A stretch of 64,000 bases of DNA from Schmidtea polychroa (lineage: Eukaryota): positions 15,128,001 to 15,192,000 of the forward strand of contig CM097887.1 of assembly GCA_044892525.1 (NCBI GenBank), written 5' to 3'. Position numbers and translations under genes: made by a program. The notes below the pieces were generated by a model. The model had not been told where the DNA came from. It saw only the letters and a program-made list of their open reading frames with translations, and did no database searches. Positions 13,639 through 39,365 of the stretch are shown here, piece after piece (position 1 is the first letter of the stretch; each line of letters starts with the position of its first letter).

Positions 13639-13966
13639 ATGGTGATAATTTATTCTTAATTTAGTGAATATATTTACACTCCCGTATTGCTATTTTATCA
13701 AATTTGATTTTAATTGTAATTTCTATATTTATATTTATTTTATATTTTTAGAGATCTTATTTATTAATATTAATTATTTTGGTAACAAATTCAATTGAGA
13801 TGGGTCAAACCGGTAATCCTATTGATTGTAAGTGAATCATAAATTACTAAAATTATATTTTTCTGTAGGTTATAAAAAAAATTCACCAGTCCGACGAGAT
13901 GATTGTGGTATTTGTTGCAATGGATGTGACCCTATAAACAATACTAATGCGGCACTTTGTTTGTGA
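13639..13966 (+). CDS. Secreted cysteine-rich peptide, copy 1 (exons 13639-13641, 13752-13827, 13869-13966; 58 aa)
   Basis: All introns are GT..AG. The spliced ORF is MRSYLLILIILVTNSIEMGQTGNPIDCYKKNSPVRRDDCGICCNGCDPINNTNAALCL*, with a hydrophobic leader and 6 Cys. The exon structure is conserved in 4 copies. Confidence 0.85.
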
Positions 13967-16900
13967 AAANNNNNNNNNNNNNNNNNNNNNNNNNNNNNNN
14001 NNNNNNNNNNNNNNNNNNNNNNNNNNNNNNNNNNNNNNNNNNNNNNNNNNNNNNNNNNNNNNNNNNNNNNNNNNNNNNNNNNNNNNNNNNNNNNNNNNNN
14101 NNNNNNNNNNNNNNNNNNNNAATAATACATTATGTTAAACTTTCTGCATATTTAAATATTTTGCTTAAAATAAATTTTATTATCGAACAAATAAATGGTT
14201 AGTATAAAGTGATGATTTCTTGGTAGCAGCATTTATTATTTAAAACAATAAATTATTAATTTAAGCCTTTTGCTGCGAAAAATTTTATTATTTACAGTAA
14301 AAAGGCTTAAATTAATACTTTATTGTTTTAAGTAAATGGTTAGTTTAGGAAATTTTATTTTTTCAAAAGATTCTTTTCTCAATAATGTTATTGAAACAAA
14401 ACTGCTAGAGGAATTGCTTGCAATGTAATATTATTTAAATAAGGAATTCAGCAAACTGCACCAATCTGCAACATACATTATCATAAATCGATTATTAAAT
14501 TGTAAATAATCTTAATTAATCAAACAAATTATTTAATTTAATTAGTTACATTTTTAAATATCTGAAGAAAACGTATATTTTATTACATTCATATGTCCAG
14601 TGACTATTTAAAACATAAAATTAAGTAAGTTGAAAGTAAATATTAAATGATAAAATCAATTTTAATTTTATACATTTAAAAAATAATTTTCAAACAAAAA
14701 ATAATGAATCTTTCTTGTATTTATTGAAGTGAAAAAGTAAAATAAAATTACATTTTCTACAGCATGATAACTTGTTTTGATCAAAGTACGAAAAAAATAT
14801 GCGCATAATAAAATTAAAATGTTTCAATATTTATTATGCCAAAAAAATTCAATTATATAAAAAAGATTTTTAAGAAATAATGGACGGAAACTCCTAAATG
14901 AAAGGTTCCAAGGAGGTATGAAGAGATTAATATGGAAGCTATTCCCTTTGATATATAAATGAGAAAATATAAATTAATCAAATAAATAAAATATTTTTAT
15001 TTGATGAAAAGGTTTTTAAATTTAAACAGATAAGAACTTTAAAGAATAAATGAATAAGAAGTGTTGAGGTCTGTAAATTAAAATAAAAAAATTTAAATAA
15101 AATTTAGGATAATAATTCAAATGGAAAGTAAGCGAGGAAAAATGGCAAATAAAAGCGGGATCGTGCACAGAATTAATAGTAAAGGAAAGTGCGATGGAAA
15201 CAGTATTAGAAAATGCAAAAAGCAATTACGAAAGGCGAGAATCCGGAAATCCGAGAAAAATCAATAAATGGAAAAATCATCGAAATCGAATGGGAAAAAC
15301 GGGACAGGTATAGATTAGCTAATGGTCAACAAGATGATGGTTAGGGATTTATCAGAAAAGGGTTAGGAAGGGTCGAAAAACATTCAAACGTATGAAAACA
15401 GAAAACGTTAATTAATTAATTAATTGGCTAATGAAAAACCCGAGCTAATGGAGAACCCGAGAGATAAAGGAAACCCGAGCTGGGTAAACAAGAAGAAAGG
15501 CAAACAAAAGGAAGATTTGGGCCCATTAGCTTGACACAATGATTAATGGGAAAAGAGTATGGAGAAGATAGCGCGCGTAGGAAGACCGGTAGGGCCATTA
15601 ATTATCTGGATTCGTTGGACCATTATGGATGACAGCCGAAGCAAACACGTAGGAGAAAATGTCAAACGAAAGATTGGCTCGGCAATAACCATTTGTCATC
15701 CTGATTTTGAGGAGTATATAATCAAAGGGAAAATCAGAGAAAATCGGCATTTTGCCTCAGGTAGGGTAAGAAGAATCGAGAATAGTCGAGAGGTAAAAAC
15801 GAATTTAGGGAAGTAGGGAAAAGAAGAAATAGAATTAAGAATACGGAAAGGCAAAAAGGGATCAAACCAAAGAGAAACCGAGGAAAAAGAGAGTCGAGAG
15901 AACTAAAGGATCAAAAGGTGAATATTGTTTGTTGGCAAAGCATCAACGCCGAGCTGAGAATCGTATAAAACTTTGATTGGTAATTGTAGCGTGATAATAA
16001 ATTGTGAACCTGTTGTTTCAATATACGTTGGGTCGTTCATTGTTTTAATTTAAAGAACACCAGGAGTCAGAGAGAACCGACTTGAAATAATCCAAAACCC
16101 AACAGAAGGATTATTTGTTAAATTTCGTTGATTTTCTCGAGGAAAAGAAATTGTCATTCAAACATGGGATTACGTAATTTTCAATAATAAAAGAGCGGGA
16201 GATTCATATTAATATTAAAAAAAATGTCCTCTCTCGAAAAAACCTACTAATTGTGAATGTTTTAAATAAAACATTGAATCTCAGTAAAATTTGAATCAGA
16301 AAAGAAAAATTTTGTATTACGAAAAAAAAAAAAGTTTAAATATTTTTAGGACTTGATTACATCGTTATAGGATAAAATGGTTCTTTTTAATTAATAATTC
16401 TTGCTCACTTTTTTTCTTATTACAGTCAAAGTCTTATAAATAGAATATTTTCTCAATGCTTTAATTTTCATATCATTTGTATTAAACTTATTTATATTTT
16501 TAAATACATGAAAGTTTTAAATTGTGAATTTGATTGAATAATATGAATCCAAGCAGATTCATGCAGATTCTATTGGATCTAATCCAAGCAGAAAATAAAA
16601 TAACCACGACATGGTCTGAATAGTAATATCAAAACACTTCTTAAGTTAGTTTGCTAACCAGTTTGTCTGTGTCTGATACTAGAACCATTATGTTGTGAAA
16701 CTCTAAAAGTTGCTATTCTAAATATTCATGAACCGATATATTTTATTTACAAGTAATTATGATGCACAATAATCTAAGGTAATGTTTATTCCTTCGTAAA
16801 ATTGTTGAATTCTCTTTCAAATTACTTGAAATAAGCAGACTAGGTATAGCGATTATTAAGAAATTATAATTAAAAAAATATTCTTTAACTTTTGACATTT

Positions 16901-17280
16901 TTCTAATTACTAAAAACAAACTTAATAAATTCACATTTTAATTTCTGAGATAATATTTTCTACATATTGATTATATTATAAAGTTTTCATTCTAAGTATA
17001 TTCCATATAAAAACGTTATAGTTCAACATAAAACGGTTAAAAGAAAAAAATGCAAATAAAATATATAACAACAGGGTACTTCTTTAGGTACATTAATTCA
17101 AATTATGTTATCGACTATTAGTGCAATTTCGTCATTAAATTCGTCGTGAAAGTTATATCATAGAAATAATGGGTGCTAAGAATTCATTACCAGATAAACA
17201 TAATTTAGATATAAATATATTAACATATTGTAAAAAATAAAGCTCAAATCAAAAAAGAAAATATTATAAAAAATCTGAAA

Positions 17281-37600: not shown

Positions 37601-38796
37601 CAGAGGTGGCCAAACTTATTTTTACTTGGGCCAAAAAATGAAATTTACTTGATTCAGAGGGCCACAAAAATTTTTTTTTCAATCATATTAAAAAGTATAA
37701 ATCCAAATATGTAATACAATGGATGGAAATTAACTGTATTTTTTAATCATTAAATTTTAATTCATTTTTAATTCATTTTTGTAAAATATTAAATATGGAT
37801 GCGCTTGCATGGAAGATGCCAGTTTTGTAATATTTGGTTCTATTTTTGACGTTGCAATTATTAAAATATCCCGCAAATAATTATCTGATAGTTCATTTCT
37901 GTTATTCGTTTTTGCATTTTTCATTTTTGAATAAGTTTGTTCACATATGTGAACAAGCTGTTCATCTGGAAATGCTTCATCGACGTCAAATGTAAAAGGA
38001 TTTTCAAATAGTGTTATTTCATTTGATATATTGCCGAATTCTGAAAATCTGTCTTCCATATTTCTTATCAATAATTTTATTGTATCACTGAATATATTAA
38101 TTGGTATATTGGTTTTTAGTTCACTGGATTTTTTTAAAGTATCGCAAATTTTGAAATGCTGGAAATTATTCTCAGATTTGTGAAATAGTGTTAATGTTGT
38201 TGAAAAGCTTTGCACGTTTGAATATAGCTCGCTAACTAATTTCATATTGCTTTGCATTTTATTAATATATTTGTTCATATGATCAACCAAATCCGTTAAA
38301 AATGCTAATTTCCACAATCAAACATCATCTTCAATCTCAGGAATTAAATGATTTTTTCATTGCAAAATGTGATTATTTCTTTTCGTAGGTTGAAAAAACG
38401 TAATAATACTTTACATTTACTTAAGTAATTTAAATGCTGCGGCCTTTCCCACAGATTATTAAAACAACTATAAAACTTAAAACTTTTGAGAATTTTCTCC
38501 TAACTACGGCGCGAAATATATAAGTACATGGAATACAATAACTGTACAAATTCAAAATTTCTGAATTTTACCAGCATGCTTTGCCACAAGTTTTCAAAAT
38601 AAATTATAGAACATATTTTTTCTTATTTTTATTTTGATATTACAAAAAAATGGTAAATTTTTTTTTTCGTTGATTAAGTTTTGAAAAAAAATTAAATTTT
38701 TTATAAAATTACATGATTTATTAAACGCTTCGAGAGCCAAAGAATGGAAGCTGGCGGGCCAGATTTGGCCCTCGGGCCGTAGTTTGGGCATCACTG
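37601..38796 (-). mobile_element. Internally deleted hAT (Buster/Charlie-like) transposon with transposase fragment (38317-37757)
   Basis: TIR CAGAGGTGGCCAAACT / AGTTTGGGCATCACTG and a perfect TSD ATTTAAAT. WKLAFLTDLVDHMNK...MQ...LVSELY matches the Charlie/SPIN transposase C-terminal region. Confidence 0.9.
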
Positions 38797-39036
38797 ATTT
38801 AAATTATAATATTCTCTTAATGATCAAAAAAACAATTTTCACAAAAAACAAAATAAATAAATTAATAAACATGTGCCAATTAATATATTTACAAATATTT
38901 TGTAAAATTTATCATATTAAATTTATTCCAATTATTCAGTTCCTATGGCAAATAAATGCATAATATTTTGTTTTAATTTACTTTCCGTGTATTTATTCTC
39001 TAAAGAAATAATGATTTATAATAAATTAGAAATAAA

Positions 39037-39365
39037 ATGGTGATAATTTCTTATTAATTTAGTGAATATATTTACACTCCCGTATTGCTATTTTATCAAA
39101 TTTGATTTTAATTGTAATTCCTATATTTATATTTATTTTATATTTTTAGAGATCTTATTTATTAATATTAATTATTTTGGTAACAAATTCGATTGAGATG
39201 GGTCAAACCTGTAAACCAGATGATTGTAAGTAACTCAAAAAATTTACAAAATTATATTTTTCTGTAGGTTATAAAAAAAATGCACCCGTCCGACGTGATG
39301 ATTGTGGTATTTGTTGCAATGGATGTGACCCTATAAACAATACTAATGCGGCACTTTGTTTGTGA
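39037..39365 (+). CDS. Secreted cysteine-rich peptide, copy 4 (exons 39037-39039, 39150-39225, 39268-39365; 58 aa)
   Basis: Spliced ORF MRSYLLILIILVTNSIEMGQTCKPDDCYKKNAPVRRDDCGICCNGCDPINNTNAALCL*, with 7 Cys. Confidence 0.85.

Follow-up and report, generated by a model that had tools for sequence, protein, structure and literature searches.

The window analysed here is a 64-kb stretch of Schmidtea polychroa DNA (GCA_044892525.1, contig CM097887.1, positions 15,128,001–15,192,000). It has a G+C content of 25%, a heavy transposon load and introns of 41–50 nt. Four small spliced genes coding for cysteine-rich peptides, referred to below as c1 to c4, are located in it in the same orientation. We consider it reasonably probable that they are functional paralogues forming a tandemly duplicated array, and that each of them codes for the precursor (56–58 aa) of a secreted mini-protein stabilised by disulfides.

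An initial annotation, made from the sequence alone, had placed four loci of a common layout in this region: an exon consisting of the ATG only, one of 70–76 nt and one of 98 nt, joined across GT–AG introns into open frames of 56–58 aa. All four loci were found where they had been placed, on the forward strand and with agreeing coordinates, and the layout was reproduced in each (Table 1). Intron 1 (103–110 nt) has its GT straight after the ATG and TTTTAG at its 3′ end, while intron 2 (41–42 nt, GTAAGT...TAG) splits the codon of the first framework cysteine; all introns of the four copies have GT..AG boundaries. Joining the exons yields intact frames of 58, 56, 58 and 58 aa for c1 to c4, respectively, and exon 3 closes with Cys-Leu-stop in every copy. 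A 35-nt pattern describing the signal exon has exactly four matches in the window, all of them on the forward strand (0.00 expected by chance), and the same is true of a degenerate pattern coding for CCNGC (0.02 expected). The tblastn check for further copies suggested along with the initial annotation was run within the window, together with regular expressions and blastn, and returned only the four known genes, with no fifth copy in the 64 kb.

The coding sequence of all four copies is free of assembly gaps. The stop codon of c1 ends at 13966 and the nearby N gap (13970–14120) belongs to its 3′ flank; past this gap, the DNA at 14175–14279 shows collinearity with the corresponding 3′ flanks of the other three copies. 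Another gap (22968–23132) is located between c2 and c3, outside every copy. An AATAAA hexamer is conserved in c2–c4 about 140 nt past the stop codon.

Table 1. Coordinates of the peptide genes, the duplicated units that contain them, associated repeats and other features of the window.
Feature	Position	Strand	Remarks
c1, whole copy	13639-13966	+	
c1 start codon, putative exon 1 end	13639-13641	+	GT donor directly after; ATG conserved in all four copies
c1 exon 2, 76 nt	13752-13827	+	signal peptide and start of mature peptide
c1 exon 3, 98 nt including stop	13869-13966	+	Cys-rich core; N gap begins 3 nt further
c2, whole copy	20915-21237	+	
c2 start codon	20915-20917	+	
c2 exon 2, 70 nt	21028-21097	+	in-frame 6-nt deletion relative to other copies
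c2 exon 3, 98 nt	21140-21237	+	
c3, whole copy	32238-32559	+	
c3 start codon	32238-32240	+	
c3 exon 2, 76 nt	32344-32419	+	
c3 exon 3, 98 nt	32462-32559	+	TAA stop; junction codon is Phe, not Cys
c4, whole copy	39037-39365	+	
c4 start codon	39037-39039	+	
c4 exon 2, 76 nt	39150-39225	+	
c4 exon 3, 98 nt	39268-39365	+	
Duplicated unit, c1	12321-14557	+	self-BLAST; ~1.3 kb upstream, gene and 3′ flank; contains N gap 13970-14120
Duplicated unit, c2	19804-21931	+	self-BLAST
Duplicated unit, c3	31465-32796	+	self-BLAST
Duplicated unit, c4	35657-40054	+	self-BLAST; extra partial copies of upstream module and transposon insertion
hAT-type non-autonomous transposon, 1.2 kb	37601-38796		~240 bp upstream of c4 ATG; terminal inverted repeats, 8-bp target duplication
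Foldback/MITE-like dispersed repeat, c4	39373-39558		just 3′ of c4 stop codon
Equivalent repeat, c1	14199-14335		
Equivalent repeat, c2	21245-21430		
Equivalent repeat, c3	32567-32744		
Same repeat elsewhere in window	25360-25628, 33786-34070, 60556-60866		
mir-753 family hairpin	55104-55164	+	permissive Rfam scan
mir-753 family hairpin	54652-54713	-	permissive Rfam scan
mir-753 family hairpin	56692-56750	-	permissive Rfam scan
Innexin gene, two exons	61219-62476	+	Pfam Innexin E = 1.7e-34 and 4.2e-10

The peptides were originally described as having 6–7 cysteines, an invariant CCNGC and the framework C-x11-C-x2-CC-x2-C-x10-C. The cysteine counts are indeed 6, 7, 6 and 7 in c1 to c4, and CCNGC is unchanged in all four copies. 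The framework as a whole, with inter-cysteine loops of 11, 2, 0, 2 and 10 residues, is present in c1, c2 and c4 and fails in c3, where the splice-junction codon specifies Phe, so that the framework lacks its first Cys, and a Cys further upstream, at position 22, is kept instead. This extra upstream Cys is missing from c1. Three of the leaders end in MG, that of c3 in IG.

The four loci were aligned, the columns were split by region and the mean pairwise divergence was computed. It amounts to 1.9% in the signal-peptide codons and 2.3% in intron 1, to 10.4% in the upstream 240 nt, 10.8% in intron 2 and 10.6% in the 3′ flank, and rises to 18.4% in the mature part of exon 2 and 30.7% in exon 3, which codes for the mature peptide. 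Mature-peptide codons are 3–15 times as diverged as introns, signal-peptide codons and flanks, with 56/117 variable columns in the mature part vs 63/448 elsewhere (Fisher p = 1e-13). The five Cys codons common to all copies nevertheless cover 15 columns without a single change (p = 2e-5 given the variability nearby; p = 1.6e-7 when Asn-Gly of CCNGC is counted in). The cysteine scaffold is kept and the loops are hypervariable. dN/dS in the mature part (Nei-Gojobori) is 1.3–3.3 for every pair except the near-identical c1/c4.

The only coding length change among the four copies is the in-frame deletion in c2. Of random codons in the DNA of the window, 8.6% are stops, which gives p = 0.005 for 58 codons staying open in any one copy. 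Intron 2, with its GTAAGT donor and T-rich ..TAG acceptor, agrees in these sites with the 50-nt intron (GTAAGT..TAG, 61558–61607) in the innexin gene of the same window. Overall, the four copies look like selected, spliced genes, and decaying repeats or chance open reading frames (ORFs) would fit these data badly.

Each gene is part of a duplicated unit of roughly 2 kb. The c1 and c4 exons 3 are nearly identical (3/95 differences), yet the upstream regions of these two copies are the most different, therefore the array must have exchanged segments. A repeat resembling miniature inverted-repeat transposable elements (MITEs) follows every stop codon and is therefore older than the duplications. 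The hAT-type insertion is found in the c4 unit only, the other three copies being without it at the equivalent point. A 186-aa ORF within this insertion (37760–38317, reverse strand) looks like a transposase remnant and has no Pfam match, and a second transposase remnant, at 25619–26179 on the reverse strand, is an ORF that includes a BED zinc finger (E = 6.9e-5). A 700-bp direct repeat with 97% identity (10042–10741 and 41504–42203, 31 kb apart) brackets the whole peptide-gene array.

In such surroundings the four frames could also have arisen by chance in a locally amplified repeat or transposon-associated segment, and the repeat-rich array, the MITE-like repeat at each 3′ end and the hAT insertion upstream of c4 would all be expected then, just as the conservation of flanks, which equals that of the signal exon, and the lack of a protein record both in a collection of 15 billion proteins and among 1.84 billion representatives. 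We regard this as very improbable. The divergence island coincides exactly with the mature-peptide codons, and yet the five Cys codons and CCNGC are invariant in it. Neutral decay cannot account for this, nor for the fact that all four copies have kept their frames and splice sites intact, that the indel is in frame and that dN > dS. Moreover, the copies all point the same way and no terminal repeats belong to the duplicated unit itself.

The 5′ end of the genes allows two readings. The initial annotation postulated an exon consisting of the ATG only. The ATG followed by GT is indeed present in all four copies, but the same peptide can be obtained with a start codon donated by a spliced leader. 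In this version, c1–c4 are two-exon genes with a leader trans-spliced at the exon 2 acceptor, so that Met, in frame with Arg2, comes from the 3′-terminal AUG of the leader; the genomic ATG|GT plays no part, and what looks like "intron 1" consists of a promoter followed by an outron. Spliced leader trans-splicing is known in Schmidtea mediterranea, the leaders reported from flatworms all have AUG at their 3′ end, and this AUG is able to start translation (PMC12582326); the features of the window also point to a flatworm host. Exon 2 opens exactly on a codon boundary immediately behind an in-frame stop, therefore a leader spliced there gives an identical peptide; up to the hydrophobic core, the exon contains no ATG in frame. 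TATAAT located 20 nt upstream of the genomic ATG would place the transcription start downstream of this ATG, although further TATA-like strings are found upstream and such matches mean little in DNA with 75% A+T. "Intron 1" (2.3%) exceeds all other non-coding stretches in conservation and has no stable RNA fold, as could be expected of a core promoter or outron; a structured RNA in it was ruled out (z = -0.42). On the other hand, the genomic ATG with its immediate GT is found in the same frame in four copies out of four, and trans-splicing affects only a minority of the mRNAs in flatworms (PMC12582326). We see a leader-donated start as a tentative possibility, somewhat short of an even chance.

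With either start, the leader consists of one Arg, ten hydrophobic residues (mean Kyte-Doolittle hydrophobicity 3.08 over residues 3–12) and a polar stretch, and by inspection the N-terminus would be a classical signal peptide. The putative MG|Q cleavage (Gly19|Gln20), initially proposed together with a possible pyroglutamate, is unfavourable under the (-3,-1) rule because of Glu at position -3. A cut after Ser15, with Thr at -3 and Ser at -1, would be at least as good by the same rule.

The suggestion of a lineage-specific family without a described match agrees with all protein, contig and literature searches, which were negative. No Pfam family was matched at E ≤ 10, including any toxin, conotoxin, insulin or hormone family; a word-index protein search found no homologue and a profile search against PDB sequences gave no match at E ≤ 10. 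The sequence-profile search was based on three precursors (without c3) and recovered no family member from 1.84 billion protein representatives. Three kringle-repeat proteins that came up among these representatives were rejected as spurious because one short stretch was matched many times. The four exact peptides have 0 records in the collection of 15 billion proteins, and no relative was seen in viral contigs and metagenome contigs. A literature search with motif strings matched only degenerate polymerase chain reaction primers, and no description of a secreted mini-protein family of this type in planarians was present in the literature searched. These results support the view of c1–c4 as a probable lineage-restricted family of small secretory-type disulfide-rich peptides.

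AlphaFold was run for c4 and for c2, with the same three-precursor alignment (without c3) behind both. The mature parts of these paralogues are 46% identical. Both models have the same topology, with a predicted local distance difference test score (pLDDT) of 82–86 over the Cys-rich half: a short strand, a six-residue helix over CxxCC and a two-stranded hairpin bearing the last two cysteines. In a Foldseek search against PDB, the only small-peptide neighbours were knottins: maurocalcin, SOTI-III, PAFP-S and tachystatin B. The matches are non-significant, with target-normalised template modelling (TM) scores of 0.46–0.61 and root-mean-square deviations of 2.5–2.6 Å, except one SOTI-III match at 4.1 Å. 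The models have no structural neighbour in a viral structure library. A possibly new fold had been proposed for this family; since both models display a strand, short helix and beta-hairpin typical of knottins and small-peptide neighbours, albeit non-significant, are knottins only, a knottin-like fold with atypical loops appears more likely than a new one.

The following sequence of events can be envisaged for the expression of these genes. A Met codon, either from the genomic ATG|GT located 103–110 nt upstream or from a spliced leader, would be joined to exon 2, and the 41–42 nt intron splitting the codon of the first framework Cys would be removed. The N-terminal 15–19 residues would bring the chain to the endoplasmic reticulum and then be cut off. 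The remaining 37–43 residues could fold on three disulfides, probably with the knottin pairing I-IV, II-V, III-VI, around a CxxCCxxC core, with a beta-hairpin between the last two cysteines. As nearly all variation is concentrated in the loops of 11 and 10 residues, an external and changing target would be most likely, such as receptors of prey or predators, or microbes. Presumably, the peptides would be components of gland or mucus secretions. A host-manipulating effector, also proposed initially, fits poorly with a free-living planarian as the host.

Several points weigh against the secreted mini-protein account. The absence of the first framework Cys from c3 is one of them, and the two seven-cysteine copies would imply either a free thiol or a dimer. 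The net charge of the mature parts is 0 to +3, unlike that of typical cationic antimicrobial peptides. Gene conversion that made the 5′ parts alike could exaggerate how much signal and mature codons differ, and in c4 the ATG has a hAT transposon 240 bp upstream. At about 7–10, the Foldseek E-values are non-significant, and both models lean on one three-sequence alignment. Finally, both the exact-peptide lookup and the profile search of protein representatives came back empty.

A different role, that of endogenous signals (hormone, neuropeptide or reproductive factor) rather than molecules of defence or predation, seems rather unlikely to us. The succession of C-x11-C and CC..C..C bears a loose resemblance to the arrangement of cysteines in the insulin superfamily, in which C-x11-C of the B-chain and CC-x3-C-x8-C of the A-chain have a connecting segment between them. 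In c1–c4, however, just 2 residues separate the "B-like" C-x11-C from the "A-like" CC-x2-C-x10-C, leaving room neither for a connecting peptide nor for the N-terminal helix of the A-chain, and no insulin or hormone family of Pfam was matched even at E ≤ 10. The Arg-Arg pair, which could suit a signal, is present in c1 and c4 but not in c2 and c3. A net charge near neutral is compatible with such a role, and fast evolution is also possible in reproductive proteins, but three sharply different types within 26 kb and dN > dS would be unusual for ligands of conserved receptors.

Secreted defence or predation peptides remain our preferred reading. Its boldest form, i.e., the first toxin-like disulfide-rich family from a free-living flatworm, having a non-knottin fold or connectivity and a start codon supplied by a spliced leader, is in our opinion quite unlikely. 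If expressed, c1–c4 would constitute a fast-evolving family of secreted mini-proteins in planarians and provide a handle on defence or prey capture in these soft-bodied predators, and they would extend the repertoire of cystine-stabilised peptides by a scaffold whose loops are of unusual length. Small multi-exon genes of this kind escape both ORF-based and homology-based annotation. The locus is also a clean small case of focal hypervariability amid conserved flanks, and it may exemplify translation start at the AUG of a spliced leader.

Among the other features of the window are three hairpins of mir-753, a Schmidtea mediterranea microRNA (miRNA) family. The best of them scores 61.8 bits vs the gathering score of 62 (E = 1e-11), and 27.7 bits with the generic bantam model. 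They sit in a block of inverted duplications (53689–56900). mir-753 carries the bantam seed (PMC4842261), and sme-miR-752/754/756 are planarian miRNAs as well (PMC3854530). The three bantam-seed hairpins are probably a real planarian miRNA cluster. Taken with the innexin gene, the heavy transposon load, the 25% G+C and the introns of 41–50 nt, they would make a triclad planarian the most likely host, the hairpins being the chief indication; Hydra was rejected as a host because of the bantam-family seed of these miRNAs. A near-perfect palindromic hairpin at 44028–44136 gave sub-threshold matches to mir-9261, mir-392, mir-147 and mir-754 on both strands, and a foldback repeat is a likelier explanation for it than a conserved miRNA.

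The only close relative of the innexin gene product is a UniParc-only entry (P0001, 88% identical), the N-terminus of which looks mis-started inside the equivalent intron; no match was found among PDB structures, where a nematode innexin could be expected, and a nematode host was rejected for this reason. A weak zf-RVT match just downstream of this gene (62877–63116, forward strand, E = 0.02) is probably a decayed retrotransposon of the type without long terminal repeats. Against PDB chains, an open frame at 3204–3629 on the reverse strand gave E = 2.7e-44 for the N-terminal domain of HSP90; no Pfam family was listed, and the frame could be a live Hsp90 exon or a pseudogene fragment. An intact ATG-to-stop ORF of 426 aa with a long acidic tract (7820–9100, reverse strand) could be assigned to no Pfam family; neither a homologue in the protein search nor an exact record turned up for it, and it may be an orphan gene or be derived from a transposon.

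The presence of an innexin gene next to genes for small cysteine-rich proteins brings to mind polydnaviruses, where cys-motif genes are found beside viral innexins. The cys-motif genes code for Cys-rich secreted products and have introns that are more conserved than exons. An origin from a wasp polydnavirus was rejected in view of the 25% GC, the spliced innexin, the mir-753 hairpins and the negative searches of viral contigs and structures.

Another similar arrangement is that of the aphid BCR peptides, encoded by short orphan genes that lack annotation and lie together within ~20 kb (PMC3574423). BCR1/2/4/5 resemble c1–c4 in being clustered orphan genes with a conserved signal peptide and a diverged Cys-rich part which has fixed spacing and 6–7 cysteines. 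The cysteines of mature BCR4, however, are at positions 17, 21, 25, 32, 34 and 48, with none adjacent (PMC9604261). This spacing, C-x3-C-x3-C-x6-C-x1-C-x13-C, is different from that of c1–c4 and rules out their membership in the aphid family. In addition, the BCR precursors are longer (69–79 aa), their host belongs to another phylum and no PDB sequence was matched at E ≤ 10.

Knottins (conotoxins of framework VI/VII, spider toxins, tachystatin B, PAFP-S, maurocalcin) share with c1–c4 the C-C-CC-C-C order, in which cysteines III and IV are neighbours, a size of ~40 residues and the contrast between a conserved leader and a hypervariable mature part; a hairpin between Cys V and Cys VI is predicted in the models as well. 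Their six-Cys order within ~30–50 residues is found in c1, c2 and c4, whereas c3 would use its upstream Cys as Cys I. The loops are different. Classical inhibitor cystine knots have 3–7 residues in loop 1 and 3–6 in loop 2, compared to 11 and 2 here, so the remark of the initial annotation on unusual loop spacing holds: these lengths are outside the usual knottin and conotoxin ranges. In the KNOTTIN database, loop a is biased to lengths 3 and 6 (PMC2238874). There was also no sequence or profile match to knottins, and structural matches were non-significant. The signal sequence and pro-region of the conotoxin O-superfamily are missing as well, as no Pfam match was obtained at E ≤ 10 and c1–c4 have no pro-region.

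Lineage-specific cysteine-rich secreted peptides are common in invertebrates. MgCRP-I of Mytilus galloprovincialis is an orphan family restricted to one lineage, its signal region being conserved and its mature peptide hypervariable; six invariant cysteines form a C-C-CC-C-C array, the genes have undergone duplication and positive selection in the mature part, some members have lost a cysteine, and the function is not known (PMC4558851). c1–c4 are similar to it in their orphan status, conserved leader, hypervariable mature part, order of cysteines and signs of positive selection. At the same time, the MgCRP-I consensus C(X3-6)C(X1-7)CC(X3-4)C(X3-5)C does not accommodate loops 1, 4 and 5 of c1–c4 with their 11, 2 and 10 residues, and the MgCRP-I precursors have a pro-region ending in a dibasic site and are encoded by four exons, the last of which contains the entire mature peptide (PMC4558851). 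In c1–c4, there is neither a pro-region nor a conserved dibasic site, an intron splits the first Cys codon, and no sequence similarity to MgCRP-I can be seen. Belonging to none of the families compared, c1–c4 appear to represent a new family in the well-known class of toxin and defence peptides.

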